Assembly: GCA_963924565.1 (NCBI GenBank)
Contig: OZ004611.1
Location: 21,452,001-21,516,000 of the forward strand
Length of the DNA stretch: 64,000 bases
From: Ascidiella aspersa
Lineage: Eukaryota
Direction: 5' to 3'
Shown: piece by piece, positions 3,401-63,966 of the stretch
Position numbering within the stretch: the stretch's first letter is position 1
How the letters are laid out: each line of letters opens with the position of its first letter
Made by a program: the position numbers and the translations under genes
The notes under the pieces: generated by a model
The model's database searches: none
Told to the model about the DNA's origin: nothing
What the model saw: only the letters and a program-made list of their open reading frames with translations

Positions 3401-6400
3401 GACCAACCGACGCGACCACCTGTTTTTTAATACGTTATTTTATCCCTACCTACTGCACTTATCCAAGAAATCTCCACAGAAGTAGTGGCAACGTTGTCGA
3501 CCTTAAGTTGGGAAGGTGCGATTGGAACTAAAAAACACAAGAATGTTTCGTTTTGCGAAAGTGAGCACATGGTTTAAGATTATTACATTTTCTGAAAAAC
3601 AAAAAAATATATATATTTGGAAACTTTGTTTTGTTGGAACTTTTGTGTTATTGTCAGTGATTGAAATTATTGGATTACAATAGTTAAAATTATTCTGTTA
3701 AAAAAAAAAAAATGTCCCACACGTTTTGTTATATTTTTCCTATTACAGTTTAATAAATCGTTGGCTTTACATCAGTACAAGCAACAAAATGAGATTAAAA
3801 CTCTTTAATAAACGCTAATTTTATAAGGTTTAACAACAAAATCGCTTTTAGCTAAACTGGTCCAATAATAATAAATATAAAGTGGGAGTATTTCACTTGT
3901 TTGTTCCATCACGATGTGAGTTGTCGCGCTCGTGAGTCCATCACGGCCGATCGCTTTCACGAAAACTCCGTAAACCGTCCCGGGTTTCAACTCTCCCACG
4001 TGGAATGACGTCATCATTATGTCGAAATTATCTGTCGACCTTATGACGTCATCCGTGCCTTCCAGTTCTTGCAAAGTTACGACGTACAATTCCGCGCCTT
4101 GGAAATGTACACTTTGTTTTTAAATTGTTCTGCGGTATAGGTCTTTAATTTTCTGATCATTTTAGGTAGGAACATATTGATCCACGCCTGCCACTTGTAG
4201 CATATAAAAACTTGTTTTTACTATTTATACCGGGCCTAGTATTGGACAAGGAAATCTTTGCCTGTGAAAGAATACAAGTAACCCGTGTAGAAAATATTGA
4301 ATAACAATCCAAGAAAAGTCGTTCCTGTTTACAATGTTGTTAAACCATAAGTTTATCTAAAGCAACGGGAAAAGCCAAACGCAAGTATAACTTTTTAGGT
4401 CCGTATAAGAGAACGGCGTCATTGTGTTACAATAGACACTATACTAACCGGTAACAGAGTTCCAAGAAATAGAAATGGTCGTGGACGTGATGTCATCGAT
4501 TTTAAAGTTTTCTGGCGATGCAGGCACTAAAACGCAATAGTAAGTATAACTATTATTAAAGGCCATTCGTAACGTTTTATTTTAGTGTTTAAGAAACAAC
4601 GTATAACAGCCTATAGAAGATTAAAATAATTATTTTGAATCAATTTGAACGAAACATGTTGAAAAAAATCTAATTAATAAAAAACATTCGGTTAAGGATA
4701 ACAGATTATGTAAAGGCTGTCATACGTATGGTCATACGGATTTGATGGATTTGTAATTTAATTGAACAATCTTTTCTGCGAATGTTTTATTTGTTTCGAG
4801 TAGATTTCATTAGTTACCAGTTTGTTGCGTCACAGTGGCCGAATTCGCGGCGTCGACGCGATTTTTGTCGCCAACAGAGTATACGTGAAACGTGTAGAAA
4901 AGCCCCGCGTCCAGGCGTAAAACGGTCGTAGTTTCGTCGTCGACGTTTATGGTTTGAACGACGCCGTTCACATTGTCGATTGTGACGTTGACAATATAAG
5001 ACCTGGCACCTGTAAAACCGCAAGCGTTAATGGCCTGGATAGAGGAAAGAGCATCATTTTTCTGGTTTGATGATAATATAAAATGAAAGATTTTATCTAA
5101 ATTTAAACTGCGCCTGGTTTAAAATATTTCAAACAAACATGTTCAAAAAATACGTTCAAACAGAGCAAAATGATTCAAAAAGGGTACTATGTTATTAGTT
5201 TTGGAAATGCGAATCCCGGTTTTTAAAAGGGCAAATGGCTGTAAACATTTCATTTAAATGTTCATCAAAAAATATTTACGTGTAGTTTTGCCGGAATAAG
5301 TTCGAGTTTTACCATCGAGTATAACATGACTAATGACTATGCCAGGGTTTACCGGTTGCTGGAGTCCATTTAATGTCAACGCTGTCCGTAGTCACGTCCG
5401 TCACTTCCACAAGAGTCGGGGGCAATGGTACTTAAAACAAATTAGTGAAAATCGTTTTGTGCACAGAATGGCATAAAATGTATGACAAATTTAAAAAAAG
5501 GTTATATATTTCAAACATAAAGATTAAATCAAGTACATAACTTGGTAAACCAAAACTCAGTTTGCTAGATGTTATGAGATAGATATATTTCGTTCCTAAA
5601 AGCTTCATCGGCATTTAAATTCGAATGAATCCTGATGATGCTTTTAGGAGCGAAATATATTTATCATATAACATAAGTTATTTAGTTAGTTTAATCTTTA
5701 TCATTGATGTGCCACCAGAATCGTTTGTTTTCACGATTCGGATTCAGGCAGAGGTATTCAAAAGAAAATCCTGTTTATATTTCAAACATGTGAGAAACTA
5801 TACGGTAAATTATTAGAACACACATGTGTAAACTATTAAGGTAAAATATAGCAGGGGAATTACACTTTTTAACCTATAGTACTGTTTTTTTACAGTTAGC
5901 ATAAATCAACTGAACGCATTTATAAATACTAGACTATAGTTATATTTGTTCAAACGTTTTACCAGTTTGCTCTACTATAGTGTCAGAAGGTCCGCTTGTC
6001 AGATTTCCGCCACCGTTTGCTTTAACGGTGAATCTGTACTCGATCCCCGGCGCCAGCCCGTCAGCAACAAATGACGTCATTGAAGTGACGACTGATTTTG
6101 TGACGTCACCCGCCCGTGACGTTTCCACCAGGTAGCTACTTGCCCCTGAAGATTGCAAGTAAACGCTTTCTATTAAATAGTGTGACCAACAATTGGGTGA
6201 ATATTTGGAATAAATTATATTGTCATTTTTTTTGGAAATAAATTATATTGTTTAGTATGGACAAAAACTTTGATTGCTAACTATTTTTATTCTCCGACGT
6301 CTAAACTTTCTAATTGCAAACTATTTATATTTTCTTACGGTTTAACTTTATTATTGCGAACTATTCTTATTTTCTTATTGAAAGGTAAAACATACAAGCC

Positions 6401-7679
6401 AGCATAACCTAAAAAGCATTGGAAAATTTAATGTTGATAAACAGTTAATGATTAACAAAAACGTTTTGACATTAACGGGCAAGTTTAGTTAATATGGCGT
6501 CAATAACAGTCCAACTAAACCCGTTGCTTTAATACTTTGAACTTGGACTACCAGTAATAACATGTGATTCATGCTGATTAAATAAACGAATTTTATAACG
6601 CATAGGTCGCTCTAGCAAAACTTTCAAATGCCTTTAGAATGTATAGGGTACTATTTTTCGAAATAATCTTTGACTTCAAGAAGTTTAGGTAATCCTAATA
6701 TAATGTAATGACTTTGTTAACAATAGGGAAACAAATCCGATAAATGTAAATCATTTTGGTAATATGTTTTCTTTAGTTTAGTTTAGTTACCATATACTTG
6801 ATTCCATGATAACGCTACGAGACTCGAAGTTACTTCGGTAGTAGCAAAATTCTCTGGTGGCCTAGGCACTGAAACAAAAAAATTAGTTACGAACAAGTTT
6901 GGGTAAAAATATAGATAAAGTGTGATCGTTAATTGGTGCATGTAACTTTATTTAACAAAAATGTTAAATCAAAATACAAGATGATATCTACATCGATAAA
7001 TATAACCAATTTGCAACCTTTTTTGGTTTTAATTGACGCCCTCAAAATGGTACCACTGATTTCAACAAATGTTGTACAACCATTTTACTTTGAAAGTAAA
7101 TTAGTTTTTACCTGCTTTATTTTATTTGAATTAGTTTTACCTGTTTGCTGTGCAACGAAAGCGTTGTCTTTTGCGTTCAGACGATTAAAGGCCCCGACAG
7201 AAAACAGGGTGAAATTGTAAACTTGGCCCGGTGTCAAATTGCCTATCGTTACGTCACTGGATGACGTATTCACTCGGTCGAACACCGTATCGGAATTCTC
7301 AAGTCTTACAACCATGACGTATCCAATGGCACCTGAGGAAAAAAACGAAACTAGATGGGTGAAAATTTGCTCAACAAAAATAATTTGCGATTATTTAGAC
7401 AAGGAAACTTTGCAGGAAAGATAAACTTTTTGTTAAGATCTACTCCTTATTCAAAATAGGCTGAAAATAATAAAGAAATCTCTTTATATCACAGTTTTTT
7501 CTTATTGCATTTTTTTTTAAGTTTTAGAGCTGTGAACAAATCCAAATCCATCTATAACTGCATTGGCAATGGATTCTGTCAACAACAGAATGTCAACAAA
7601 CCTCTGACGTCATCCCACTTCAGTTCAATAGATGACGTAGAAACAGAGACGACCCTTGGTGCTCCAGGAAACGAAGGAA
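493..7679 (-). CDS. FN3 exon block (3'-most in window): 6 domains plus a half-domain, 2-domain alternation
   Basis: Exons 493-570, 1009-1203, 1631-1708, 2597-2788, 3450-3527, 3897-4097, 4449-4526, 4818-5009, 5353-5430, 5963-6145, 6791-6868, 7141-7332, 7602-7679. Confidence 0.88.
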
Positions 7680-10600
7680 CTATGCGATACATTTGGAAAT
7701 CAATTAATGGATGCACTTTAAATGTACCTTCCAATTTAACGTGTTAGTTCAACAGCAAAAAAGTTGTGTTATTAGTTCGAACTCCGTTTTAAGTGTACCT
7801 TTTTAGTTATCTATTTACAGTAAGTTTGAAACCACTATTATCGGTTTGCATTTCAACCTTTATCACAACTGTTATATACTATAATTCACATCCTAAAATT
7901 CGCTTACAAAGTGAAACTCAGTCGTACAGTGATGAACATGCACGCCATGCCAATACAAAATCTACTATAATTAAAATAAATCACTTACCGAACAACCTAC
8001 AAATGAAAACATGCCAAGCATGTAGCATGCAGCTTGATAAAAAAAGCATTAAACCTGTAGGGATATACTTAACAATAAAAAAATGGGTTTATTTAATATA
8101 TAAAGAATTTTTTTTTAAATTGCATAAATAAACACAGTGACTATTCAAATTAGCCAACTGTGTAGATTACCGGTGATTTCTTGTATTTGTTTACTGCTTT
8201 CGCTAACTCTCATTTCCTCGCCAATGCTCCTAACGGCAAACCAATAAGCTGTACCACTCGCGAGTGACGTCACGTCTAGCGACGTCACGTTTGTGGACAC
8301 CGTGTCGGTGACGTCATCGCCGAGTGACGCGTAGTCAATCTCGTACGACGAGGCACCTGGAACATGTAAGGACTGAATCAACTTGAAAAAGCAAAGGCAA
8401 AAGAAATAGGAACAACATTCATTCGTACAAAAACAGAGAAGTACATCGTACAATCACTATAATGTTTTATAAGTTTATGATTAGTCTTGTAAGTATTTAT
8501 AAGTGTAAGTATATTGAATCCGAAAATAGGAGATGAGCTTGCAATTTAACTCGGAACATTTAGCTATCCTGCATCAAACCACGACCTATAGGGTTATCGA
8601 TATCACAGATCGAACGACATCCCCTCCATATACTCGATAGCAGCTGATGTTTTTTTATTACTCGGACGGTAGCGATTTTGCCAAAAAAATCCCGTTCCAA
8701 CAAATTTTCTACTCCACATGACAATAAAACAATTGGCTAAATAAACTATGATTAACAGTTTCTATTTACCCGAGCAGTGTTTTTTAACCGAAACGGGTTA
8801 TTTAAATATAGCCTACTTCTGAAACTACGACAGATCTTTACTGTTAGTGTACTTTTAGGAAATGTTTGCGGTTACTCAAAAACCTATACATTATTGTTCG
8901 AAAAAATTGCTATTTCGGATCAACTTATAGTTGCCTATTGTTCTAGGTGCGACCTCATATAAACAGCAATACTCAAACAAAAATTAAACCACGCTCAAAC
9001 CTGTAACAGGATTCCATCGCAATGACAGGCTGGTAGTGGAAACATTGTAAGCAACAACTCCTGATGGTGGCAAGGTAACTAAATATACAAAAACAATTAA
9101 AAAATGACGTACAAGTATAGTACCGGCAAAGAAGGTTAAACCAGGGGTCTAACACTGGGTTATGTAGACCCCCTTGAGAGTTTGGTGTACGATTAAAATG
9201 TTTAAAGGATTTTTTTAAAGAAAAGAGTAAATAAACTCTTTGGCGCCTTCTTATATTAAGACTTCATTTCAGTTTAACTTTTATTGAAACAAAAACAGCC
9301 AGTTTCTTAAGTCTACTTATTTCATGGCGTCAATTTATGTCGTCATTTCCACAAAATCCCGTGCTGACTCTGATCCACGCCGAACAAAAAATATTTAAGG
9401 TGGACTGCTAAAAAAAAGTTTGAAAACCCCTGGGTTACACAATCATTTTACACAAAGGTTTAATTTTGAGTAATGAACCAGGATATATCCAAAAATTATT
9501 TAAACAAACTATACAATCTTGATTTATTTCTAAGTTAATTAATTAATTGTTTTCATGCAATTTAAAAAAGATTAGCGTACTTTGTGTCTGTAAAAATGTT
9601 ATTTTTATCCAAAAAAAAAAGATTTTAAAATATATATAAAAAGGTTCTTTGCCAGATATATTATATCGATTCTTTCTATCGAACACCTCGTGAGAATTAA
9701 ATTAGAAATAAAAATTTCACCTGTTTGCAATGTCAGTAAATCTGAGCCCTTCTCGTTTCGCCGTCCCTTGATTCCGATTGAGAAAACGACGAATTCATAC
9801 CACGTGCCCGGCTCTAAGCCAATCACAGTCGTCCGCGTGTCATTGCCTTCTAGGGTCGACCAATTAAAATCGCTTCCACGGACGCGGTAAAGCAACTGAT
9901 AGCTCTGCGCACCTAAATGAAATAAATATTATTTTATTTGGAATGTCTTGACGATAATTCATGCGACCCGTCATAAAGCAGTTATACGAAAAGTTGTGCA
10001 TTTTGTCAAAAAAAAATTACCTGTAACCGGTTGCCATTCCAAGGTGCTTGAATTAGTTGTGACGTCAGCTATTTGCAATCCAGACGTAGTTGCGGGACCT
10101 TCGCGAAATAAATAACATTACACTAAATTGAAAACTGCATTGGACTATACGACATTCAGACGTAAAAATGCTGTTGAGTCAATATTCACTTGTTGTATAG
10201 TTATTAGTAATATTATACTTAAAACTTATGAATATCACGAATGGACTCACGAGTTGTTTCACGAGCTACGTGACTCGCCCTGCTAAGACCTCCGCCGGTA
10301 CCGACTGTTTGCAGGGTGAAAATGTAGCTGGTGCCAGATTGAAGCCCGTCGACTGTTAGTGACGTCATGTTCGTGCGCTGTACAGTTTGGACATGGTCCT
10401 GGCCCAGCGGATACAATGAGACAACGTAAGAAGCAGCTCCTGTAAAACAATAAAGTAAAAATGAATAGGATGTTTTGGGGTAAAAGTGTCACTGTGAGCT
10501 ATTGGGATGACCATATGAGATATATTGTCCTTGTTAATTTGCACATATTATTTAACGAACTTACGCAAGAACGACAGCGTACCCTTAAAAAAAGTAAAAA

Positions 10601-13600
10601 AAAACTATACTGGAAAAGGAGTCGCACTGATCAACGAAGACTATCTTATATTAGGAGTATACAACCACACAAACGTTGAACAATGCGCATGTTTAGTGGT
10701 TAAACCAATTTCAATAAACCTATATATGTAGCCTACATTTGGAAAAACATTTTACAATTTTAAAACTTTCTCTTTTCTTACCGGAAACACTACTCCATGC
10801 AAGAGATAACGATTCTTCCGTAACTGCTGTAAAGTTGATTGATACTGGGGGAAGAGGAACTGCAGAGAAATCCAAAAATGTTTACAAGTTGACCAGTTGT
10901 TCGCTTTTACGTTTTGTAACATAAATCACATTATTAAACAATCGTTTTACAATAGTTTTTAATTAGCTTTCAAAAGTATAATGCTTTATCAGCAACCATT
11001 AATCTGATTATGTCGTGCCCGTGCAATAGGTAGAGGCTATAGTTTGAATATGATTGTTTATGAAAAACGTATTATTCAAAGTGGTTTAGTTGTTCATTAA
11101 TATAGCTTTTAAAGAATTTAAAAACTTAAAGCAAACTGGGTCTGACGCACATTTCTCACAGGTTAAAAATGTTTCACAATTTAGTAACTATATTCAATAG
11201 TTAAATGATGAACCAGTCTATACCTGTCTGAAAGTTAACCTCTACAGATAGATTGCGGTTTATGGCTCCCAGTGATCCAATAGAAACGACGGTAATAGTG
11301 TACCAAGAACCTGGCTTTAATCCAATTGCTGTTGCCGTTGGCTTGTCTGCTTCTAGGCTAAGGGAGTCATTGTTGTGCAGTTCAAGCAAAAACATGAAGT
11401 AGCTGCTTGCACCTGTTTAAAAGTTTGATCTATTTTAAGTGTAACAGCCAACCGATTAAACCTAGGTGGCCGGGTGGGGTTAGGTTTTTCTTTGTTTATT
11501 TAGTGTATTTTTGGCGTTTTATTATTGCCTAAACTATTATATACAGTGACGGTTTTTAGGGTAACACAGGGAAATAAAAACAATTAATCATGATACATTG
11601 GATGGGCACTAACATTTCTATATACGATATGTTATACAGTACAAGACGAAAAACGGCGTTTTGCACTCGACTTTGGTTTCGCATTAGATTAAGACGCGTG
11701 ACCCAATTACTTAAAAAACACGCCGCTTCGAACAGTACAAAAACGATAATATCACTTACAAAAGGGGGGTAAGAACTTTTACCGCAACATGACATTTTCT
11801 TTTATTATTAATTTTACCGCCTTCACATTCGTTATTTACACTTATCGTTACTCCTGCATTGAAATAAATGTGGTTAGCTTACCTCGAGCTGGAATCCAAG
11901 AGGCTGTCATGGCGGTTTCGCTGACAGAGACCACGTTAATTACGTTGACAGGCTCAGGCACTGCAAAACAAGGGAGTTTAGCGCCTGATTAAGAAGCATA
12001 CATTTGGCCCTAAGTAATACTCCTAAAAGTTATTTGGTTAATCAATATGTGCGCGCTTATGATTTAACTTTATCTTATTTTACGATATTATACGTTTTAC
12101 CCAAGCCCCAGGGAAACATGTACCTATTTATATTTGCATTAGAACTATTCAGGCGAAGGTTATGTCCGATGAAATAGTCAATCCGCTGTTATTACGTGCA
12201 CAACATAAAAACGAAATTTAGTAAAGCTTTTGAGAAATATCGTCGTCAATGCAGAAAGATGAGTGAAAAATATGTAAGAGTCTACTTGATTTAAACTCGC
12301 AAATTTAAGGATAAAATTTGAGAGTTTTATAAAAAAAGTCGGGCCCCAACTTTTAAGTATTTCGGCTCGAAAAAAAAAAAACACAGTAAAAAAACGCTAA
12401 AATAAGTTGTTTTGAGTGCTTTGTGAAACTCACGTGTAGCGACGATTCTTGCTTCTCCTTTTTCGCTCAGCATGTTTCGCTCTCGTCCCACCGATTGTAC
12501 GCTGATCCCGTAGGCGGTGCCGGGTTGCAATGACATCACTGCTAGTGACGTCGACGGCGTGCTGATATTGCGAAGGGACTGGGTGCCGTTGGTGAATTGC
12601 GCGATGTGAAGAATGTACGAGGCGCCTGTGTGAAAAAAGAGAAAAAATACAACGTAATTCTTATACTTAATTGGTCAAGACATTTTCAAAATCGTTTCGG
12701 ATCAAATATTTTTTTATAAATTTTCGATAATTTAGCAAGGGAGCCGATACCCGATGCCAAGTGGTAGTATCGGCATCCGATACCAACCGATTCGATACTA
12801 AGTTAATGAAGTAATTTCGGCCATAATTTGCGATCCAACGCACAATTTTCTTGCAACGTATATTTTTAAAAGTATGTTAGGTTAACAACTTAAGGTAAGT
12901 AAACTTTTTAACACCAAATTTTTGCGTGATAACCTGGAAAAATTACATTTGAACATTTAAAGTCCATCTATTTCGCTTGTTTGAGTGTATTAGTGACGTC
13001 ATTTGGTATCGAATCGCGATACTTTATGTCTAAAATATCGGTCATCGGTATCGGAATAAAACGTCAAGTGTCGGACATCCCTAAAACATAATTATTAAAA
13101 AACAAGAATGTGATCTCGCCTTCGTAACATATGTACACATAATTACCTGTTGTTTCTTGCCAGGTCGCTTGGACCGATGTTGTCGTTATGTTGTTTAATT
13201 GAAGTTCGGAGGGAACCGCAGGCACTGTAGAAGGAATGCAAAGTTCGCGTTGGACTGGGGCCACTTAAAATGGTAATGACATTAAAATACACTTTTTATC
13301 GAATAAATTTGATATCGATTTTACTCTTTTCCCGACAAAGTAACAAATAGGACAGGCACGGATACTTAATACCGATACTAAACAAATACTTTATGGAATC
13401 GTTTACTTTAGCAATAAATATCCAAGACCTCTAAAAATAAACTTTAGAGGAAACACCTACGTTTAAAGGTAGTATACCATGTAAAAATATTTTTAAATGT
13501 TTGGTCTGGCATTCCTAGTAGAACCATTGTATCAATATCGGGTAAAACTACGCCATTTGTTTAGTAAAGACCTGTTTGTTGAAGAATAACAGGACTGGAA

Positions 13601-55600: not shown

Positions 55601-58600
55601 GTACCATGGTATGATACAGCACGTAAACTTAATTTTTCGCGCTTCGCCAAAACAAATGGGGCCGAGATTTAGGCTACTTGCATATAAGGCCGAGATTAAC
55701 TTGCATATTTGCGCGCGAGTGAACTCTCGAAGAGCGGGTGTTCGTAAGTTGATTTGTTTTATGACGTCACGATATGGCGTAAATTATGACGTCACCCCTT
55801 TAATTCGACAGGTTTTGCGGCCCATCGACATTTTTAAAGTGGCAATGCGGCCCATTCTGCTGAAAGGTTGGACATCCCTGGTTTAAGCAATAGTTACATT
55901 TTTACCAAATTTAAAAAACAAATTTTACTTCGGTTGTAGAACGCATGGAAAAATAAACCAACCTTTGACCCCGTTCCAGGTGAACCTCATTGACGAAGTG
56001 GTGACGTCACTTATTACTGTTCCATCCGGAGCGAGAGGAACTGTGACGTACATGACACGGGTTAATATGGATAAATGACGTCAGGTTATAAAATAAAATC
56101 AAATGTAAGGTTTAAAAAATTACACAACATTTAAATTTTTGTTAATTGTACAACAACATCCAAAGTCACCATTACTATTTGCAAAATTTATTATTTTAGT
56201 TATACAACACAGTCAAAGTCACGCTAACTAGTTTCTGAAGTTTTTTTTTTATATTTGTTAGATTCCAATGACGTCGTTTATAATAAGTAAAGTCTAACAA
56301 ACAATCACAGCTTTAAAAATATTTATAGGGTCGAGTTTTTATGTTGTACCAAACTGCCTCATTGAAGTTTCTAAATGCATTTTCGTCCAAACCATTTAAC
56401 CACCAAATAAAAGTGAACAAAAACCGACCTGTTTGAAGTTGTATCTTGTCGCTCCCTCTCTCGTTTCTCCGATCCTTGATTCCGACAGAGAAGACGACAA
56501 ACTCGTACCACGTGCCCGGCTCTAAGCCAATCACGTTTGCTTCTGGCGCTAAGGTGTTAACCACGCGTGGCTCTTCCGTCGTTTCGTTGTTCCGGTAATA
56601 CACCTGGTACTTTTGAGCACCTGCCAATCAAAACAGTTAACGTTATTCACTGTTAAAACTCTAGTCTATGCACTTGTGTGCAACAAGCTGATGCACATTA
56701 TTAGTGGCTTCTATAAGGTAAGTTAACAACATTAAGGCATTTGCTTCTGATAGCTCAAAGACAAAAAAATTATAAAAAAAAGGTTTTCCATGTATATATT
56801 TTTATATAACTACCAAGGGATATTATACGCATTTTATTTGAAATGCTTAAAACTTATTTTTATCTATATTTTACTTCCACGTTATTATCCTACAAGTAGA
56901 ACTTTTACATACATTGTCAGTTCAAAAGTATATGTGACACCAATTTACTCAATAACCCTAATATAATGTGAAATTGTGAATACTTCTAATCTTCTACCTG
57001 TTACTGGCTGCCATGACAACGATGCCGAGTTGATGGTGACGTCAGTTACGTCCACGCCGGATGTTCGAGCGGGTCCTGTCATTTATACGAAATACAAAAT
57101 AAGGCAAACAGAGAACGAAAGTTTGGTTCCACTCGTGAATTTAAGTACCCTTTCAAAAAGTACCTATAAAAGTATTCTATGGTAAAGATCTGAGGTTTTG
57201 CCAACTCCAAACTCAGTATATACAGTAGTTGGCTGAGGGTGGTGTATTTAAATATTTTAATGGCAGTTTCTTTTTAATAATTTTACTTCTATTATAACCC
57301 AAATTTTTGTTTAATAAACAAATGTGCACTTAAAAAGGTTAAATAGGACAATTTAAGTTTTATAACGTTATTTGGATGATGACGAATTTTTTTTTCACTT
57401 CACCAAACGAAAAACACTGGTAACTTAAAATAAATATTAAATAAACCTTTGAGTGCTATCATGTGAACGTATATAATCACGAAAATGTCAGGGAACTCAC
57501 GAGTGGCGTCACGAATCTCACGGCTCACGGCACTCTTTGCATCTCTGCCGACCGTCCTCAAAACAATGACGTAATTGGTTCCCGGCTGGAGACCCGTTAC
57601 TCTGTAGGAGGGCGCCTGTGACGTCGCCGGGACGTTGAAAATACCGATGATGTCACCCGTTGATGACGTAACGTCCACTTCGTAGGACTCGGCACCTGAA
57701 TGAAGAGTAAGCTTAAGGACGGGTAAAAAGTCTAATGACATTTTCGAAATTAATAGATAAAAATTTTACACGGTTAAAAAACGCAAATTTTGCAAAGGTT
57801 TTAAATATTACCACACACTTACGGTTTTTATTAAAATTTTAATATATGTTTTTTTCCCGGATAGCATTTACCACCTTAATAATGTTCTAATTAATTCATC
57901 ATTTTTTAGGGACCTTAGAAGCAAAGCTCCAAACCAGTAAAGTATAATTGCGCTAAACAGCCAACCCAAAACACTTTTTATTTTTTTTTATCGTTTCAGC
58001 GGGAAATTTTCTCGCTATACTGACCGGTAATTCTTCTCCAACTCAGGCGAATCGAGTTGATCGTGACTTCGTTGACGTCGATTTGGCTGGGAGGGTTTGG
58101 AACTGAACAAAAAGAGAAATAATTTGTTACACCAAAAGTTTTAAAATTGAAAAAATGTCGTAAATTTATGAACAACGGTAGTTGTATTGCGCAATGTCGT
58201 GAAGGTGTTGGCACAAACGAAGCCGGAATAAGGGTTCCTTCTAAATCTAAAGCTAGACCAGCGGTTCTCAACCAGTGGGCCATAGCTCACTGGTGGGCCA
58301 TAAGAACATTTGAGGTGGGCCACAGACCAATTTAAAAACGCTAGATTTAGTTTCATATATTTAATTTTACAGGAATAATGGCTTGGGGAGAAATTAAAAA
58401 GGAATGTAAATTTATTGTTCAGCCACAAGTATCTCACTAATGCACGGTTAAATAAATAATCTGTTTTGAAATATTTTCTGCTGTGTTTTGTTTTTTTCCT
58501 TCATAAAACTATTGGGCCGCAGAATTTTTTTTGCAACGTGGGCACTGAGCTAGACGATATGGAAATCAATATACATTTAAACCTAATTAATTATTAAATA

Positions 58601-61600
58601 GACAACCTATGCACTTTTAGCCAACCTACTTAAAATAATGTTGTTTAGCCTTTTTTCGTTCAATATTGAAAAACAGACACAAATAAAAAATAAAAAAAAA
58701 ACAGACACAAAATAAATAAAAAAACCGTAAAACTCATCAAATCTATGCTAATAAATCCTCAACAATAACAGAATAAAGAGTAACTAATATCTAAAAAGCA
58801 TCAGTTTATTTATCTTTTATACTTTGGGAAAAACATTTAACGGCGGATGACAAGTTAAACCTTGGTTTCTTCATATCAATCATTTGAACACTCCTCACCT
58901 GTCTGGATATTGACGACCAACGACTCGTCGGCATTGGTAACGTCAAGGTCACCGATAGAGGTCAACCTAAACTCGTAATAATTTCCTGGTCTCAAACCAG
59001 TCGCAGTCTGCGTGAGCAGGCCTGTTTCGAGACTAGTGGTGGTGGCATCGTTCACGTTCAAAACGGTTAGTCGGTATCTCGAAGCACCTTAAACATGTAA
59101 AAGTATACATCTTGAGCAATAATGGTTACTGGTTAGTAAACTATTCAGTTTTAAGGGCCAATACGTGATTATATTGTCAAATAAATGTAAATATATATTG
59201 TATAGATAGATGATCTTAAGACTATTTATAGAAAACAGGTTTAAAACATAAAATCTTTTAGAAATATATATTTCGCCTTATAAATAGCCATCGTTAGTTT
59301 CTGTCCAAAATGCTAACATTTTGGCATTTTATACATGTCTATTTCAAAGGTGAAATATATATATTTCTGTAAAGTTTTAAGAAATGGTTTTATGTTTTAT
59401 ACCTGTTTTCATAAACAGTCTTAAGATCATCTGATACGAAATCAAGAATCTTTCTTTTACATTTTATTGTCTGCGGGAGATTCCTTACTTCCTTAAGTGA
59501 CTCAGCTTATATTTTGTATAGCGTATAAAATAACCGCCATTGATTTGTGAAGGGGGATTACCTGTAGCTTGTGGCCAGCTGATTGTAACTTCTGTTGTCG
59601 TAACCGAATCGACGTCCCAACTTGTGACCGCATTAGGCACTGTAAGACGAAATAAAAGTTTGCAGACAAGGCTATGGTGCCGTGGCTAAAAAAAGTAAGC
59701 GGGAAATCGTATTTTTACAAGTTTACAATTTAGGTAAAACATGTATAGAATTTAGGTAAAAACACCTTAAAGAATCGTAAACACCTGACAAGAGGCACGA
59801 AACGATGTAATTAGAATTTAAATATGCAAAATATAGTTAAAAATCATTTACATAAGGAGAGCTACCATTGTTTATGAAAAAATTACGTTTATATTCTTTA
59901 ACTGGTTTGTGATTGGTAACAGAAATAATTTCAATATAGTTTCTAAAGCTAGATAACACTATACTGGTTGATAAGAATCAACTTACATGTTGCCCTGATA
60001 ACTTGGGCGCTTTCCCCGCTACTGAACACACCCTCCTCTCCGAACGAGCGAACCGTGAAGCGGTACTCCGTTCCCGGTTGCAGTGACGTAACTTGGTGTG
60101 ACGTGCCCTCCACCGTGACGTCATCGACCTCCACCTCGGCGCCGGAGTCGACGCGCAGAACGCGCACTTTGTAGAAACTGGAACCTGGCGAGCAACAAGC
60201 AACGGAGATTAGCAATTGAACAGGTTGACTAACAAACATAAAATTAAGAACTACAATAGGATATAATGATGATAAAAAAGGTTATGTTCATAAAAACAAA
60301 TAAAACAACATAAAATTATTTTCTAAATTTTCATAGAAATATATGTTTCGTCTATAAGGCATCGTCAGTTTTTGTACAAAAAGCAAATATGTAAAAATGC
60401 CAATAATAGTAGACTACTATGGTAGACATGTTTGCTTTTTGTACAGAAACTGACGATGCCTTATAGGGGAAATATATGTTTCTGTAAAATTTTAAGAAAT
60501 GATTTTATGTTTTACCTGTTTTTGTAAACAGTTTAAGACTATCTGATACGAAAACAAGAATCTTTCTTTTACATTTTAGTGTCTGCGGGAGATTCCTTAC
60601 TACCTAAAGTGTTTCAGCTTACAATAGAATATAAAAATTCGATGAAATCCATACGACTCTCTGTTTTTCCGACAACCACTCATCAAGCGGGTATAATTGT
60701 TTATAAAAAATAAAAACCCGTTTTGGGACGTCATTTCGGACCCATAAAGTATTTATTTTGTCCAGTTTTTCTCTATAGCATACTGTTATACATCACATTT
60801 ACCGGTGCCCATTGTAGTGTGCCTCTATAATAAAAAAATTAAAATTTTAAGTCTTTAATCTACCCTTTTTTTGTTTACTTTGATACGATATTCGGTTGAC
60901 GTACTTTGACGCTTAGTTTTGTGAACCATTAGCTTTTCACAAACAAACATTTGGGTAGTTGGGGTTTTCCCTTAATAATGTCTGTAACGGGGAAAATTTA
61001 AAACACGAAGACCATGCTAATGACCATTTTGAGTTTAGAAACACAATAACATTTACAGGGTAGCCTTTATCGTACCGTAAACGGCATCCCACGAAATTCT
61101 CGCGCTGGTGGTTGTGACGTCATCGGCATTGACGTTTTCCGGTGTAGAAGTAACTGAAAAGTAATTCAGCAAAGTTTGTTATAAAAGCTTCGGTTGTCAT
61201 ATCTAAAAAAGGCTTGGATATTAAATAAACCATAAGTGTAAAGGTTTACATCACAAAGTTACGTTTTATAAAAAAGAAAACATTTAGGATAGTAACGACA
61301 AAGGATAAAATTGTGAAATAATGTACGTACAATACCTATAGGATTCATTCATAATAAAAAATTGAATAATTCACTATTAGCAAGGCAAATATATTCTTTG
61401 TTTTATATCTCTAAAAAAAACGCTTTTACATCGCCCAAAGTGACAAACTTAAAGTGACTAAAGTAACTATACTATGCCATAAGATGTTGCACTGAATATC
61501 TCGACCTCAATTCCTAATCAGTAACAGCGGAAAAGTCTAGCCAAGCTTCCAATTCAGATCAGAAACTATTAAAAGTATAATCACATAGATTTTAAGATCT

Positions 61601-63966
61601 TTTAGCAGTGTCTGACCTCATTTCCTAGCTTTACTAAACTATTATGTTGCTATACCAGAACAGTCTAAAGAAAATTTCGATTAAAAGGACATACTGGTTT
61701 GAACTTGTAGCGGAAGACTCCCGAGATTGTTACGCGCGTCTTTCACACCGATTGAGTACACGACGAAAGTGTAAACACCCCCCGGTCGCAGATCGGTGGC
61801 CCCCACTTGGCTGACGTCACTGGAGAGGGTCAGCTGATTCTCGAGCTCGGGACTCTCCATTGTGATGTCATAGCGGACAGCACCTGGGTTTTACATATTT
61901 AATTGTCAAACTCTTTAATTGCAAATATTTATAAGAAAAAAATATAAAAAAAAGTTCTTCAAGCAAAACAGCTGTTCATTTTGTTTAAATATTCAAACTA
62001 ATTAAAAATAAATAAAAAAGCAACATCTGTAAAATTTCAACGTAAAACACCCAATTCGAAATGAACATTCGTTTTCATTTAAAGTTTACTTTATCTAAAT
62101 TGTTCGAAAAGAATGTGCGTGTCTAGTTCAAGCATTTATATTTTGTACGTCATTGCATCAACATGAAATTCGACACACTAAGTTTTTTCTCACCATGAAC
62201 CACCTTCCATCCGATTCTCACGCTGGTCGTCGTAGTTTCCAAAACAGAAGGTTGCGGTGGACTATCCGGCACTATTGAAGATATACACAGATGTGATGTT
62301 ATAACTCAAATCTTAACTCATGGCATTAAGAGTGGTTAGAATGGCAACTACTAAACGCTAAAATGTGGTCTTGAATAAAATCGTGTACACATTTTTTGCG
62401 TAAATGGGAAAAGATAGAAAAAACGTCTCGTTGTCTAACGTGAAAATGCACCTAGACATAACAAAATACTACAACTGCAGTATCAATGAAACCTGAACAC
62501 ACATATGTGTGTTTACAACTGAAATCTAGCCCTTCTGAAGCTACTTTTTGACCAACGATTACGGCTTACATATCATTAGTATACCGAAAGCCATTGCAGA
62601 CTCTTCACCGAATCTGTCGATCAATGATGCAAGCAGGGCAGACTAGAAAAACAACTAGCTGCAGTGAGGTTCGAACTCACGACCTCCGGTCAAGCCGGGA
62701 CCGTCGCTATACCAACTAAACTATGTAGGCTCAGAAGGGAACGAGTCGAGAAACAACCATACGCCAATGCTTGCTCAATCTGTTAGTACAAGCAACTTCA
62801 AAAGTAGTTGCACATTCGGTAAAGAGTCTGCAATGGCTTTCGGTATACTGCAGTATCACCTTTTTATTTCTCGAATTGAAATCGTTGGTTCCACGGTGAC
62901 TTGAATGAATTTCGATATTGAAAACGAAACATGTTCTTACATGCCTTAATCTAAAGTAAAACCATACTTTCTCCAAATTACAACCCCCTTAAACTTTGAT
63001 GTCTATCAATCTCATATATATAAAAAATGCCGCATAAGTTTAATATTCGACTTACGCGTTGACTCCGTGATGACGACATTTTCGTCGCTTTCCCGGCCCT
63101 CCTGAATTCCCACCGATTTCATTCGGATGACGTAAGAGGTCCCGGGTCGCAGTGACGTCACAATCAGGGACTTGCCGGTCGTGGTAAGCTGCAATTCGTC
63201 ACTCGTGGAACCGTCTTCATTTTGGAAAGTGACGTCGCTCTCGGGTGAGGTGACGCGGAACGCGTAGTGTGACGTACCTAACAAGATGCAGTTGGGATTA
63301 AAACAAAAAATACAATAATTTTATTAAAATTCAAAATAAGTTGTTTACTACAAACATTAGACCCGTTTATAAGTAAAGAAAATGGCAAATATACCCGAAT
63401 CCGGAAAGAATAAACCCTTTTTAATCACACACAGTTCAACTGTCTGTGCCTTGATTTTTTGGGACGCACAAACAATTTTTTTCGGAGAAGACGTTACAAA
63501 AATGTGACATAACCTGACGTCATAAAACAAGTAATTGAAACCCTCTGTGCCCGGTGTAACTTGCGCGCACATATTTAACTGAAATTAATAATGAAATAGA
63601 GTCTATTGATTCGCTAAACTCGAAAATATGTTGCGTTATCCGGTTTAAGTTGGCATCTTTTCACCCTTGGTAAAGGGGTTACTTGTATAACGCCGGGTTT
63701 AAGATAAAAAAAACTTTAATCACCCCTGAAAATTGGTGGCGATCTTATTCACATAATAACCACTGGTCTGCCTGTTTTGACACTGAAAGCACAACAATGC
63801 TAATACCGTGCGACAAATTTTATACAATTTTTTTGGTCATTTTTTTAGTGTAGGAATAACTGACATGTTGCTGAGAAGTTCAACATACCGTAAGAACGCT
63901 TCCACTGAAATCCAATAGCGCTTGTCGTAATGTTGTCCACTTTGATCTGTGTTGCTTCTTTGGGAA
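493..63966 (-). CDS. Internal part of a giant multi-exon gene encoding ~63 tandem fibronectin type III domains (extracellular; receptor-PTP-ectodomain/fibronectin/tenascin-like architecture); both ends outside window
   Basis: About 118 exons with GT..AG boundaries, all phase 1-1 and all multiples of 3. A exons (78 bp) read like VPxxPxNLxVxxVTTxSxxLxWxxVxG. B exons read like GAxxYxV...GLxPGTxYxFxVxSVG...SxxxxxxT. These carry the FN3 hallmarks (B-strand Trp, C-strand Tyr, tyrosine corner LxPGTxY). The minus-strand ORF-track hits (e.g. 19534-20004, 22981-23358, 56313-56627) are these exons extended into introns. No other domain type seen. Confidence 0.93.
690..1000. repeat. Intronic tandem duplication, ~165-bp unit x2
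   Basis: TTCAAATTTGCCC...CTTAAGCGAAATGAATAC...TTAAGTTTTCTTGCATATAT...TTTAGCCAAAA occurs at ~690 and ~855. Confidence 0.8.
2338..2540 (+). mobile_element. 5'-truncated/inverted copy of the SINE-like family
   Basis: Shares CTTGCATCATTGATCGACAGAT and AGAAGGGCTAGATCACAGTTGTT, preceded by an inverted segment CCGAAAGCCATCGCAGAC. Confidence 0.6.
2761..2920. repeat. 82-bp tandem duplication spanning a splice acceptor
   Basis: GTTGCGTTGAT...GTAAGACCTTGCGCCTGG.TAA.TATGTAG occurs at 2761 and 2843. Confidence 0.8.
5571..5672. mobile_element. Foldback element with two inverted hammerhead-like motifs (Penelope-like pLTR remnant)
   Basis: Arms GTTATGAGATAGATATATTTCGTTCCTAAAAGCTTCATCGG and CTGATGATGCTTTTAGGAGCGAAATATATTTATCATATAAC are imperfect reverse complements. 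The plus arm has CTGATGA (5632)...GAAA (5652). Stem I is weak. Confidence 0.6.
8171..16767 (-). CDS. FN3 8-domain super-repeat copy (a-h), 3' copy
   Basis: Exons 8171-8356, 9001-9078, 9721-9912, 10021-10098, 10251-10439, 10782-10859, 11224-11412, 11883-11960, 12434-12625, 13147-13224, 13572-13760, 14473-14550, 15085-15270, 15761-15838, 15965-16147, plus the A part of fused exon 16690-16953. Confidence 0.88.
9142..9432. mobile_element. hAT-type MITE
   Basis: Termini CAGGGGT...ACCCCTG; 8-bp TSD GGTTAAAC/GGTTACAC. Confidence 0.7.
12740..13083. mobile_element. Degenerate DNA-transposon remnant with CGATAC/GTATCG subterminal repeats
   Basis: Clusters of CCGATAC/GTATCGG at both ends; right end TCGGACATCCCTA. 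Confidence 0.45.
14128..14362 (+). mobile_element. tRNA-derived SINE-like element
   Basis: Pol III box A TAGCTCAGTTGG (14172) and box B GTTCGAACC (14218). Body CTGCTTGCATCATT..ATCGAC..GATGGCTTTCGG..AAGGGCTAGA.. is shared with other copies. Confidence 0.75.
14842..15050. repeat. Intronic tandem duplication, ~120-bp unit x2
   Basis: GGATAATTTT.TAAAAGCATGTTT.TTGTAGAAATA.CCACAATC.AATTAGA...CATACGACCTA occurs at 14842 and 14962. Confidence 0.8.
16690..25298 (-). CDS. Four tandem copies of a 4-domain FN3 unit (a,f,g,h) with fused exons
   Basis: Exons 16690-16953 (B+A fused), 17470-17547, 17622-17813, 18218-18295, 18367-18555, 18877-18954, 19020-19202, 19647-19988 (A+B+A), 20210-20401, 20478-20555, 20629-20817, 20940-21017, 21083-21265, 21331-21672 (ABA), 21766-21957, 22026-22103, 22322-22510, 22609-22686, 22758-22940, 23004-23345 (ABA), 23487-23678, 23748-23825, 24274-24462, 24562-24639, 24711-24893, 24957-25298 (ABA). 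Confidence 0.9.
17093..17453. mobile_element. hAT-type MITE
   Basis: TIR CAGGGGTTCTTA...TAAGAACCCCTG; perfect 8-bp TSD GATTAAAC. Confidence 0.85.
19366..19468. mobile_element. Small TTAA-flanked MITE (Kolobok-like termini)
   Basis: TTAA-AGGTGGA...TCCACCT-TTAA. Related single ends at ~13463 and ~37424. Confidence 0.55.
21766..25639. repeat. Recent tandem segmental duplication (~1.7-1.95 kb unit) including introns
   Basis: Introns 22941-23003 vs 24894-24956 and 23346-23486 vs 25299-25447 are nearly identical, and exons 23004-23345 vs 24957-25298 differ at few sites. Confidence 0.9.
24009..24227. mobile_element. hAT-type MITE
   Basis: TIR CAGGGGTTCCCAACC...GGTTGGAAACCCCTG; TSD TTGTAAAT/CTTTAAAT; absent from the paralogous intron near 22285. 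Confidence 0.8.
25448..31874 (-). CDS. FN3 8-domain super-repeat copy, middle (its h domain lies in exon 24957-25298)
   Basis: Exons 25448-25639, 25780-25857, 25939-26124, 26276-26353, 26815-27003, 27316-27393, 27782-27979, 28113-28190, 28466-28654, 29264-29341, 30435-30623, 31016-31093, 31531-31713, 31797-31874. Confidence 0.88.
29510..29700. mobile_element. Foldback element with inverted hammerhead pair, interrupted on the right by a hAT MITE
   Basis: TTTCGCCTACTGGCATCGTCAGTTCC (29549-29574) is inverted relative to GGAACTGAAGATGCCAGTGTAGGCAAAA (29666-29693). Same family as the 59.2 and 60.3 kb copies. Confidence 0.6.
29538..29575 (-). ncRNA. Minimal hammerhead ribozyme motif, intronic, sense to host pre-mRNA
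   Basis: Minus strand reads GGGAA-CTGACGA-T-GCC-AGTA-GGC-GAAA-TAT-ATA-TTTCT. Intact core, stem II GCC/GGC, palindromic ATATAT, AUA triplet, stem I with GU wobbles. Confidence 0.65.
29710..30208. mobile_element. hAT-type MITE with internal GGAGCC/GGAGCT hexamer arrays
   Basis: Perfect 15-bp TIR CAGGGCTGGGGAGCC...GGCTCCCCAGCCCTG; perfect TSD CTTAAAAC; internal ~39-bp tandem units. Confidence 0.88.
32469..40951 (-). CDS. FN3 8-domain super-repeat copy, 5' copy
   Basis: Exons 32469-32657, 32805-32882, 33349-33540, 33610-33687, 34436-34624, 35156-35233, 35763-35951, 36537-36614, 36977-37165, 37777-37854, 38010-38198, 39066-39143, 39370-39561, 39663-39740, 40205-40390, 40874-40951. Confidence 0.88.
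33821..34463. repeat. Local duplication of exon 3' end, donor site and intron
   Basis: 33821-34126 is similar to 34226-34463, including AACTCACTCGTCGTTTCAAA. Confidence 0.8.
34858..34957 (-). mobile_element. tRNA-derived SINE-like fragment
   Basis: Minus strand GTAGCTCAGTCAGTAAAGCGACAGTCCC...GAGGTCATGCGTTCGAAC. Confidence 0.65.
35547..35590 (+). ncRNA. Minimal type I hammerhead ribozyme motif (Penelope/retrozyme type), intronic, antisense to host gene
   Basis: AACC-CTGATGA-AG(tcagctggtatctgctg)CT-GAAA-C-GTC-GGTT. Intact CUGANGA and GAAA cores, stem I AACC/GGTT, stem II AG..CT and CAGC/GCTG, palindromic ACGT in place of stem III, GUC cleavage triplet ending at 35586. Confidence 0.75.
37200..37395 (-). 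mobile_element. tRNA-derived SINE-like copy (extra tail fragment at ~37476-37525)
   Basis: AGGTTCGAACTCATGACCTCCGGTCA box-B region; GAAAGCCATCGCA body. Confidence 0.7.
39901..40054. mobile_element. MITE with 25-bp TIRs and ~9-bp TSD (Mutator-like)
   Basis: GGCGCTGGGCTAGAATCCTACCACA...TGTGGTAGGATTCTAGACCAGCGCC; flanks TAACAAAAA/CAACAAAAA. Confidence 0.7.
41710..41935. mobile_element. hAT-type MITE
   Basis: CAGTGGTTCTCAACC...GGATGAAAATCACTG; perfect TSD CTGTAAGG. Same family as 54264-54538. Confidence 0.82.
42073..43295. mobile_element. Non-autonomous hAT (Charlie-like) element, ~1.2 kb
   Basis: TIR CAGGGGTTACCAACC...GGTTGGGAACCACTG; perfect TSD CTCTAGAG (NTCTAGAN target typical of Charlie hATs). 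No intact transposase. Confidence 0.82.
44449..54027 (-). CDS. FN3 exon block, 10 more divergent domains
   Basis: Exons 44449-44634, 44997-45074, 45635-45823, 46011-46088, 46554-46748, 47393-47470, 48061-48240, 48885-48962, 49461-49655, 49781-49858, 50080-50265, 50645-50722, 51112-51312, 51697-51774, 52455-52646, 52866-52940 (75 bp), 53214-53396, 53478-53555, 53658-53849, 53950-54027. Confidence 0.88.
46821..47282. mobile_element. Degenerate hAT-type MITE
   Basis: CAGAGGTTCTCAACC...AGTTGAGAACCATTG; TSD eroded. Confidence 0.55.
52052..52217. mobile_element. Small MITE with ~20-bp TIRs
   Basis: CTGCGTTTCAATTTATATA...TGTATAAATTGAAACGCAG. Confidence 0.6.
54264..54538. mobile_element. hAT-type MITE
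   Basis: CAGAAATTCTCAACC...GGTTGAGAACCACCG; perfect TSD AGTTATAG. Confidence 0.8.
54586..63966 (-). CDS. FN3 exon block (5'-most in window), 7 domains including d,e,f,g,h-type domains
   Basis: Exons 54586-54771, 55963-56040, 56429-56620, 56998-57075, 57501-57695, 58025-58102, 58899-59087, 59562-59639, 59987-60184, 61076-61153, 61695-61883, 62194-62271, 63056-63277 (222 bp), 63889-63966. Confidence 0.88.
55293..55880. mobile_element. hAT-type MITE (young)
   Basis: Perfect 15-bp TIR CAGGGATGTCCAACC...GGTTGGACATCCCTG; perfect TSD GTTTAAGC; subterminal GCGGCCC repeats. Confidence 0.9.
58259..58575. mobile_element. Degenerate hAT-type MITE
   Basis: Left TIR CAGCGGTTCTCAACC and GTGGGCC subterminal repeats; right end eroded. 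Confidence 0.5.
59208..59510. mobile_element. Foldback element, degenerate inverted hammerhead pair plus shared 3' tail
   Basis: Long inverted arms AGATGATCTTAAGACTATTTATAGAAAACAGGT...ACCTGTTTTCATAAACAGTCTTAAGATCATCT. The tail TGATACGAAA..AAGAATCTTTCTTTTACATTTTA.TGTCTGCGGGAGATTCCTTACT is shared with 60544-60620. Confidence 0.65.
60300..60621. mobile_element. Foldback element with inverted hammerhead pair plus shared tail
   Basis: Arms TTTCGTCTATAAGGCATCGTCAGTTTTTGTACAAAAAGCAAATATGT and ACATGTTTGCTTTTTGTACAGAAACTGACGATGCCTTATAGGGGAAATATATGTTTCTG. CTGACGA at 60450, stem I CAGAAA/TTTCTG. Confidence 0.7.
62490..62848 (-). mobile_element. tRNA-derived SINE-like copy with inverted duplication at its 5' side
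   Basis: GGTTCGAACTCACGACCTCCGGTCAAGCCGGGACCGTCGC; ~34-bp inverted repeat at 62579-62612 / 62815-62848. Confidence 0.75.

Follow-up and report, generated by a model that had tools for sequence, protein, structure and literature searches.

Transcription-factor sites that lie within exons and bias codon choice there, known as duons, have been claimed in humans, where the effect is small and disputed. In cyanobacteria, the octamer palindrome HIP1 (GCGATCGC) is described as 15- to 300-fold over-represented and conserved in reading frames, with no gene-level function found and its function unknown for decades (PMC5861425). HIP1 is tied to cognate DNA methyltransferases. In the ascidian Ciona, one study reports the sequence TRTGACGTCA 10 times in a 1.8-kb enhancer region and relates it to AP-1, Atf1/CREB and Xbp1 sites (PMC11001920). 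This last report, which serves us only as a lead, is what one would see if ascidian DNA were simply rich in the word. Here we analyze the octamer TGACGTCA, a cyclic AMP response element (CRE)/ATF-type site, in a 64,000-nt stretch of the genome of the ascidian Ascidiella aspersa (GenBank assembly GCA_963924565.1, contig OZ004611.1, positions 21,452,001 to 21,516,000, forward strand; hereafter the window, with positions counted from its first letter). The whole window lies inside one minus-strand gene encoding about 63 tandem fibronectin III (FN3) domains. We find that TGACGTCA is a genome-wide over-represented, or iterated, palindrome of this ascidian genome, for which the FN3 gene offers an exceptionally favorable substrate. 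The literature, supplementary material aside, yielded no description of TGACGTCA in ascidian exons or of such a phenomenon in an animal.

Within the window, TGACGTCA occurs in 66 exact copies, against a mean of 1.06 and a maximum of 4 in 100 dinucleotide-preserving shuffles. Exons were mapped with half-domain profiles built from the window itself and aligned by hidden Markov model, which gave 128 pieces (65 A exons of ~26 aa and 63 B exons of ~64 aa; 16,986 nt altogether) that were searched and counted piece by piece. Fifty-eight copies fall wholly within exon pieces and 8 in the other 47,014 nt, corresponding to densities of 3.4 per kb in exons and 0.17 per kb in introns. A reading of the window made from its letters (the original prediction) had estimated about 65 copies where roughly one would occur by chance, with about 58 in exons and 8 in introns; the total and the chance expectation agree closely with ours and the split is exact. 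On the coding strand, the word is read in the two frames named in that prediction, as xTG-ACG-TCA at 26 sites, encoding (V/M/L)-T-S, and as xxT-GAC-GTC-A at 32 sites, encoding x-D-V-(T/I/N/K/R/S). The third frame contains a TGA stop on either strand. At least one copy is present in 45 of the 128 exon pieces and in 41 of the 63 domains.

The exonic copies are not confined to a few homologous columns, an outcome that had been named beforehand as fatal to the prediction: they are spread over 20 classes defined by exon type, alignment column and frame, so that the word does occupy non-homologous positions of the domain. Four classes account for 35 of the 58 copies. At column 10 of exon A, the word encodes D-D-V-T at 18257-18264, 20517-20524, 22065-22072, 25819-25826, 33649-33656, 49820-49827 and 61115-61122, A-D-V-T at 10060-10067, S-D-V-T at 56002-56009 and T-D-V-T at 57037-57044. 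At column 38 of exon B, it encodes M-T-S at 4006-4013, 6072-6079, 10360-10367, 18476-18483, 22431-22438 and 24383-24390, and V-T-S at 27894-27901 and 32578-32585; at column 43, V-T-S at 8265-8272, 23176-23183, 25129-25136, 32563-32570, 44543-44550, 54680-54687 and 63153-63160, and M-T-S at 27879-27886 and 37074-37081; and at column 52, Y-D-V-T at 16034-16041, 19089-19096, 21152-21159, 22827-22834, 24780-24787, 31600-31607 and 40274-40281, and Y-D-V-I at 53727-53734. The other copies in exon A stand at column 9 (V-T-S, 50688-50695) and column 22 (D-D-V-R, 7605-7612; N-D-V-K, 53953-53960). Those in exon B stand at columns 14 (V-T-S, 53818-53825), 18 (G-D-V-T, 6101-6108), 19 (D-D-V-T, 8309-8316; N-D-V-T, 49608-49615; S-D-V-N, 53349-53356), 23 (D-D-V-I, 4044-4051), 28 (D-D-V-T, 60116-60123), 30 (V-D-V-N, 18487-18494; V-T-S, 52579-52586; L-T-S, 53335-53342), 31 (V-T-S, 15203-15210), 36 (S-D-V-S, 61812-61819), 37 (D-D-V-T, 46665-46672), 39 (S-D-V-T, 52563-52570), 41 (N-D-V-T, 19824-19831 and 21508-21515), 56 (L-T-S, 31589-31596; V-T-S, 37035-37042; M-T-S, 40263-40270) and 68 (V-T-S, 46576-46583). 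None of these sites is assigned a strand. Every position cited in the original prediction is right save 52578, which is really 52579.

Seven pairs of copies lie 11-16 bp apart (18476/18487, 27879/27894, 31589/31600, 32563/32578, 40263/40274, 52563/52579 and 53335/53349), much as the predicted spacing of 11-15 bp had it. The pair at 27879 and 27894 is part of a longer inverted repeat (27877-27903; 11-bp arms, 3-nt loop) that folds at -18.7 kcal/mol, a stability reached by none of 200 shuffles. Three copies are recent duplicates of others (24383 of 22431, 24780 of 22827 and 25129 of 23176). The region 16690-25400 is a tandemly duplicated super-repeat of four to five domain types, and some of its units have an A exon, a B exon and the A exon that follows merged into a single exon (for example 25290-24955). 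Individual sites can vary: a contig from run X1 has A for G at 53350, inside the motif at 53349-53356, which makes at least one of the 136 differences between the window and such contigs a change within a motif.

Neither protein sequence nor duplication accounts for this count, as had been proposed. Permuting synonymous codons over the exon set, the check by which the original prediction was to stand or fall, gave 5.0 ± 2.2 copies (maximum 13 in 2000) against the 58 observed, and a stricter synonymous shuffle that keeps dinucleotide counts gave 7.96 ± 2.63 (maximum 18 in 2000), so that the exonic excess is 7-11x over the synonymous nulls. No other exonic 8-mer comes close to TGACGTCA in number; among unrelated words the runner-up has 14 copies, and 8-mers driven by paralogy have only 7-10. 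When exons are collapsed at identity thresholds of 90, 80, 70 and 60%, 55, 55, 49 and 39 events remain, respectively. At invariant residues (the Leu and Gly of L.PG, and other G/L/A/P columns) codons are well mixed across copies, indicating that synonymous sites are saturated. Between paralogues, third positions within motifs are identical more often than other synonymous third positions in each of three divergence bins (0.55/0.45, 0.78/0.49 and 0.89/0.60), the pairs compared not being independent. Copying of longer tracts was considered and rejected, as flanks are diverse beyond position ±1.

The exact word fills 58 of the 104 peptide sites capable of encoding it (56%): 26 of 50 (L/M/V)-T-S sites and 32 of 54 x-D-V sites followed by a codon starting with A. 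Sorted by distance from the word, the capable sites number 58/19/14/7/4/2, against a null of 5.0/24.5/37.7/20.7/9.0/7.0. Regional variation within the window was rejected, with 38-67% of sites occupied in each 8-kb bin.

Codon choice turns on whether the neighboring letters make the octamer complete. D-V is written GACGTC at 32 of 40 sites when flanked by T and A, and at 9 of 33 otherwise. Similarly, T-S is written ACGTCA at 26 of 31 sites after TG and 7 of 11 after TT, and at 12 of 95 otherwise; the figure after CG is 2 of 14. All nine M-T-S sites are ATG-ACG-TCA, and none of 11 T-T-S sites whose first Thr codon is ACG uses ACGTCA. The core GACGTC occurs in exons outside the full word 18 times, with ~19 expected. 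An excess of palindromes in general was rejected, since other 8-mer palindromes total 64 against 53.8. The many one-mismatch variants noted in the original prediction do not amount to an excess as a class (exons hold 45 copies of the 24 one-letter neighbors, where the codon null predicts 36.9); a single one of them stands out. This neighbor, TTACGTCA, carries T for G at position 2 and so contains a TTAC half-site, and it occurs 12 times against 1.4 expected; 5 of the 12 copies are x-Y-V-I sites, where the perfect word is unreachable. TGACGTAA occurs in exons 2 times against 1.3 expected; one frame would read it as a stop, and in the other a synonymous change reaches the perfect word. The strand asymmetry between TTACGTCA and TGACGTAA is therefore due to coding limits. 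At z-X-V-(A..) sites, all three free positions are matched in 32 of 52 cases where X is D, 5 of 11 where it is Y, 2 of 27 where it is N and 1 of 2 where it is H, indicating that position 2 takes G or T and not A.

This is the specificity expected of a bZIP half-site, in which TGAC or TTAC is accepted and others are not, although the Y numbers are small, and the 66 exact copies have the 8-bp dyad and ACGT core of a CRE/ATF site. Neighbors that would preserve G·U wobble pairing are not enriched in exons (TGGCGTCA, 0; TGATGTCA, 4 against 2.2; TGACGTTA, 1 against 3.2; TGACGTCG, 3 against 2.5), and neighbors that a CpG transition would produce are not depleted (TGATGTCA, as above, and TGACATCA, 3 against 1.8). 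From the exact dyad, the G or T at position 2 and the lack of any gain in wobble neighbors, we infer, as a candidate reader, a dimeric bZIP protein that would act on double-stranded DNA. Of the mechanisms offered in the original prediction, bZIP binding appears to fit this specificity best.

The amino acids themselves are biased toward the word. The two kinds of capable peptide number 50 and 54, against 14.0 and 13.2 in within-exon shuffles, a 3.6- to 4-fold excess, and the reversed dipeptides are not in excess (VD, 27 against 31.5; ST, 46 against 76.8). Before T-S, Met occurs 9 times where 1.3 would be expected, and Ile 3 times where 7.7 would be; this rise of Met and fall of Ile is the expected outcome of constraint on the letters TG, and an amino-acid bias of this kind had been anticipated. 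The nearest protein relatives of one single-exon domain are giant ascidian FN3 arrays, one from Phallusia mammillata (source name 'receptor-type tyrosine-protein phosphatase eta-like', with an N-terminal VWA domain) and others from Clavelina lepadiformis and Ciona intestinalis (source name 'uncharacterized'; the Ciona relative has 24 fn3 stretches). Compared at the level of peptide density, the Phallusia relative equals the window's gene in its wealth of capable peptides (11.8 and 8.2 of the two kinds per 1000 aa), whereas the relatives from Clavelina (4.0 and 3.8) and Ciona (2.5 and 3.6) do not. No M-T-S is present in the Phallusia relative.

The excess extends well beyond exons. In the introns of the window, 8 copies stand against 0.30-0.46 expected under Markov models of orders 0-3; no intronic 8-mer is more over-represented than TGACGTCA (26.6-fold, as against 3.3-fold for the unrelated word that ranks next), and its one-letter neighbors are near expectation (15 against 9.3). 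At least four of the eight are in repeats: 12994-13001 lies within a dispersed repeat, 17176-17183 within a dispersed repeat family that carries the word, and 55762-55769 and 55787-55794 are two copies 25 bp apart in a high-copy dispersed repeat. Of the others, 18328-18335, in a short intron, and 56076-56083, 38 nt from an A exon, have no match in a small local repeat set; the flank of 49366-49373 is single-copy in the genome; and 63515-63522 has three short, weak matches elsewhere in it. Eighteen arbitrary 10-kb stretches of the genome hold 22 copies, where 1.5-2.1 would be expected; 12 of the 22 belong to repeat families that can be recognized from the sample itself. Across the genome we counted 45,059 copies, against 5,750 of the reversed word and an expectation of ~3,500 (our own arithmetic, with base composition taken from the GC content of the random sample). 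The octamer is thus many-fold over-represented genome-wide, in part because repeats carry it.

As a coding control outside the FN3 gene we used a titin-like gene on another chromosome, where 33.6 kb of uninterrupted reading frames hold 5 copies at 35 capable sites, against a synonymous null of 1.1 (P=0.004), or 1.35 with dinucleotides kept (P=0.011). The word thus exceeds codon usage within reading frames in both genes, more weakly in the titin-like one, which shows no excess of capable peptides. This titin/twitchin-like gene (G000:C9:7541966-7614685; loci L019-L048) has frames of 5899, 3700, 2540 and 1301 codons and a GC content of 59%, far above the 49% of the FN3 gene's exons.

Together, these measurements indicate a force of roughly tenfold in all compartments sampled (exons, introns, the titin-like gene and random DNA), and the octamer has the look of a word used throughout the genome, not of a code for exons. 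The original prediction of a DNA-level code laid over the coding sequence stands in so far as there is a constraint at the nucleic-acid level over the protein code; its exon-specificity does not, because the fold excess in introns and random DNA is as large as in exons and because only 45 of 128 exon pieces hold a copy. The word is focused in exons mostly because near-motif sequence sits in these 49%-GC, T/S/V/D-rich exons and is scarce in the 32%-GC introns. Two other mechanisms put forward with that prediction, gene-body methylation and an exon-definition signal, found no direct support in the window. Observed/expected CpG is 1.26 in exons and 1.06 in introns, with no sign of methylation decay, and CpG or methylation-decay effects were rejected on these values (1.06-1.26).

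Several repeats and reading frames met along the way deserve mention. The high-copy repeat at 55690-55870, which contains the pair of copies spaced by 25 bp, drew 554 candidates from the genome at first look; all 40 that were scored match at 88-100% identity, and a search of this repeat around 55.7 kb against Rfam gave no match. A second dispersed family has one or two TGACGTCA copies, 13 bp apart, in a conserved core and supplies 7 of the 22 copies of the random sample (L004:8650-8880; L009:7680-7900 and 8650-8870; L016:7190-7400; L017:420-560); in the window it lies at ~17090-17280. Over the 180 kb of that sample (loci L001-L018), the over-represented 8-mers are led by GC-rich, satellite-like words, with 167 copies of CGTGCCGG on both strands. 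A small contig (G000:C67, about 10-45 kb) has one 12,849-codon open frame full of cadherin-like repeats; this frame, unlike intron-rich animal genes, may come from a non-host (bacterial) contig or encode a giant adhesin.

The host gene was mapped from 491 to 63952 on the minus strand from the exon map, Pfam matches and a spliced contig, and it extends past both ends of the window. Each FN3 domain consists of a ~78-nt exon A (pattern P..P...dVTttS..l.W...G) and a ~190-nt exon B (pattern GA.sY...L.PGT.Y.v.v.svG...QTG), a few A and B exons being fused. Four of five open reading frames of the window that were tested match the Pfam family fn3 (PF00041), two with scores above the 25-bit gathering cut-off (40.8 and 28.2 bits) and two below it (22.4 and 20.9); together with the W, the L.PGT.Y and the strand pattern, these matches place the gene among FN3 proteins. 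A 1,737-nt spliced contig from run X3 covers six successive B exons (50,080-54,773), and the gaps in the record between the joined B exons measure 76-81 nt, fitting A exons. The gene is expressed and spliced as modelled. Runs X1 and X2, from the same study, gave unspliced DNA contigs whose letters are identical to the window's bar scattered differences, indicating that the word is no assembly artefact of one data set. In these two runs, contig depth reaches thousands over the intron segments 51300-51700, 52300-52500, 52700-52900 and 54100-54700; these are very abundant repeats, and the palindrome is in none of them.

What produces so many copies? Protein motifs, codon bias and tandem exon duplication would be the ordinary cause, and D-V-T and V-T-S are indeed natural to FN3 strands, four alignment classes hold 35 of the 58 copies, some units are recent duplicates and the Phallusia relative is equally rich in capable peptides. 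Yet both synonymous nulls fail 7- to 11-fold, words that owe their number to paralogy reach only 7-10 copies, codons are saturated at conserved columns, and codon choice varies with whether the flanks complete the word. We consider this account extremely improbable; as a sufficient explanation it is refuted by the nulls, the column map, the collapsing of duplicates and codon saturation. A neutral bias specific to this sequence, in which mutation, repair or gene conversion favors the octamer everywhere and single sites have no function, seems improbable to us, with more in its favor. Protection of factor-bound DNA and short-patch repair bias would be examples. Such a bias would explain why the fold excess is alike in exons, introns, another gene and random DNA, and why immediate neighbors do not exceed expectation, as though the word had been formed at their expense (at distance 1, 19 sites where the null gives 24.5; at distance 2, 14 where it gives 37.7). 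It would, however, require a rate shift of 10-fold or more, which is large, and CpG-transition neighbors are not depleted. We know of no such process in animals, which we also count against it. For the bacterial analogue HIP1, conservation tests favored selection over biased repair (PMC5861425), a further point against neutral bias.

The word might instead act in RNA. An exon signal of the form U(G/U)ACGUCA, bound by an RNA-binding protein and serving as a splicing enhancer or in stability or localization, is unlikely in our judgment, though it has more to recommend it than neutral bias. Splicing enhancers commonly limit synonymous change in metazoan exons, and the host gene, expressed and spliced as modelled, sets more than 125 short exons in AT-rich introns, with the word at 3.4 per kb in the former against 0.17 per kb in the latter; on the sense strand, TTACGTCA is enriched and TGACGTAA is not. 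But splicing enhancers should be degenerate, present in most exons and absent from non-transcribed DNA, a pattern that we did not find: the word is missing from most exon pieces and from 22 of 63 domains, is over-represented in introns, repeats and random DNA as well, and is enriched in a gene whose exons run to thousands of codons. An exact 8-letter dyad is also atypical of RNA-binding proteins, and coding limits account for the asymmetry of TTACGTCA. Still less credible is self-pairing, whereby UGACGUCA copies would pair with one another in hairpins or in long-range or intermolecular duplexes and so shape mRNA folding, pausing or clustering. Seven pairs of copies do lie 11-16 nt apart, and five pairs that were folded give hairpins of 8-11 bp at -11.7 to -18.7 kcal/mol. 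Two of the five beat all 200 shuffles, but the other three are within the shuffle range. Moreover, the variants that keep G·U pairing (TGGCGTCA, TGATGTCA, TGACGTTA and TGACGTCG) are not enriched, while TTACGTCA, which breaks the duplex, is. The close pairs follow from adjacent hot columns, and exons with two copies are in no clear excess: 13 of the 63 B exons, against about 10 under a Poisson spread (our own arithmetic).

FN3 strands repeatedly offer x-D-V-(T/I/N..) and (V/M/L)-T-S, and there the free codon positions, along with some choices of amino acid, are such that the octamer comes out exact. We tentatively favor a reading in which TGACGTCA, as an iterated palindrome of the whole genome, would be recognized in duplex DNA by a dimeric bZIP factor of the CREB/ATF class, with FN3 strands an ideal substrate. 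According to this scheme, sites might be kept because weak selection favors additional binding sites at certain loci or, alternatively, by a bias in mutation or repair linked to binding. A more specific proposal seems possible but doubtful: that selection keeps the CRE octamer at many loci, overriding codon and amino-acid choice, that a bZIP dimer reads it as a locus-wide signal for chromatin, licensing or 3D organization and not as a classical enhancer, and that, of the carriers known, the FN3 gene would be the most saturated with it.

Several observations weigh against the reading we favor. The density of the word in exons is 20 times that in introns. With at least four of the eight intronic copies and 12 of the 22 random ones borne by dispersed repeats, much of the non-coding excess may reflect transposon amplification unrelated to the exonic excess; unique intronic copies number only 3-4 against about 0.3-0.5 expected, and these are small numbers. 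The titin-like gene, the sole coding control outside the FN3 gene, rests on 5 sites. Because a palindrome is identical on both strands, the sequence would also allow a reader that acts on RNA. To our knowledge, homotypic clusters of factor sites inside exons are no established regulatory architecture. Finally, with one motif polymorphic at 53350, individual sites are not invariant.

If selection fills more than half of the coding places where the word fits, no animal would provide a clearer case of a second code over the protein code, one that changes the amino acids used (for example, Met for Ile before Thr-Ser), and iterated palindromes of bacteria, HIP1 among them, would have a counterpart in a eukaryote. 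If neutral bias were the cause, the word would reveal an unknown sequence-specific process of mutation or repair. Ascidians have large populations, high polymorphism and workable transgenesis, which make the case directly testable. Scans for CRE motifs and models of codon usage will mislead in this lineage unless TGACGTCA is accounted for.

Set beside known systems, TGACGTCA is the CRE/ATF site bound by CREB/ATF bZIP dimers, identical in its octamer, dyad symmetry and ACGT core; here a TTAC half-site is tolerated and TAAC is not. Classical CRE/ATF sites are single or few and lie in promoters or enhancers, whereas here 58 candidate sites are spread over coding exons, roughly one every 300 nt. 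As in duons, a binding-site word overlaps codons and synonymous choice is biased, but here one word takes up 56% of the positions open to it. Exonic splicing enhancers likewise constrain synonymous sites in the exons of a many-exon gene; they are short, degenerate and expected in most exons, whereas this is an exact 8-mer found in 45 of 128 exon pieces, with a non-coding excess too. By analogy of behavior, the nearest counterpart is HIP1 of cyanobacteria, which is likewise an exact octamer palindrome in strong genome-wide excess that lies, and is conserved, inside reading frames. HIP1 is a different word, bacterial and in 15- to 300-fold excess; the host of TGACGTCA is an animal, in whose genome the excess is about 8- to 15-fold.

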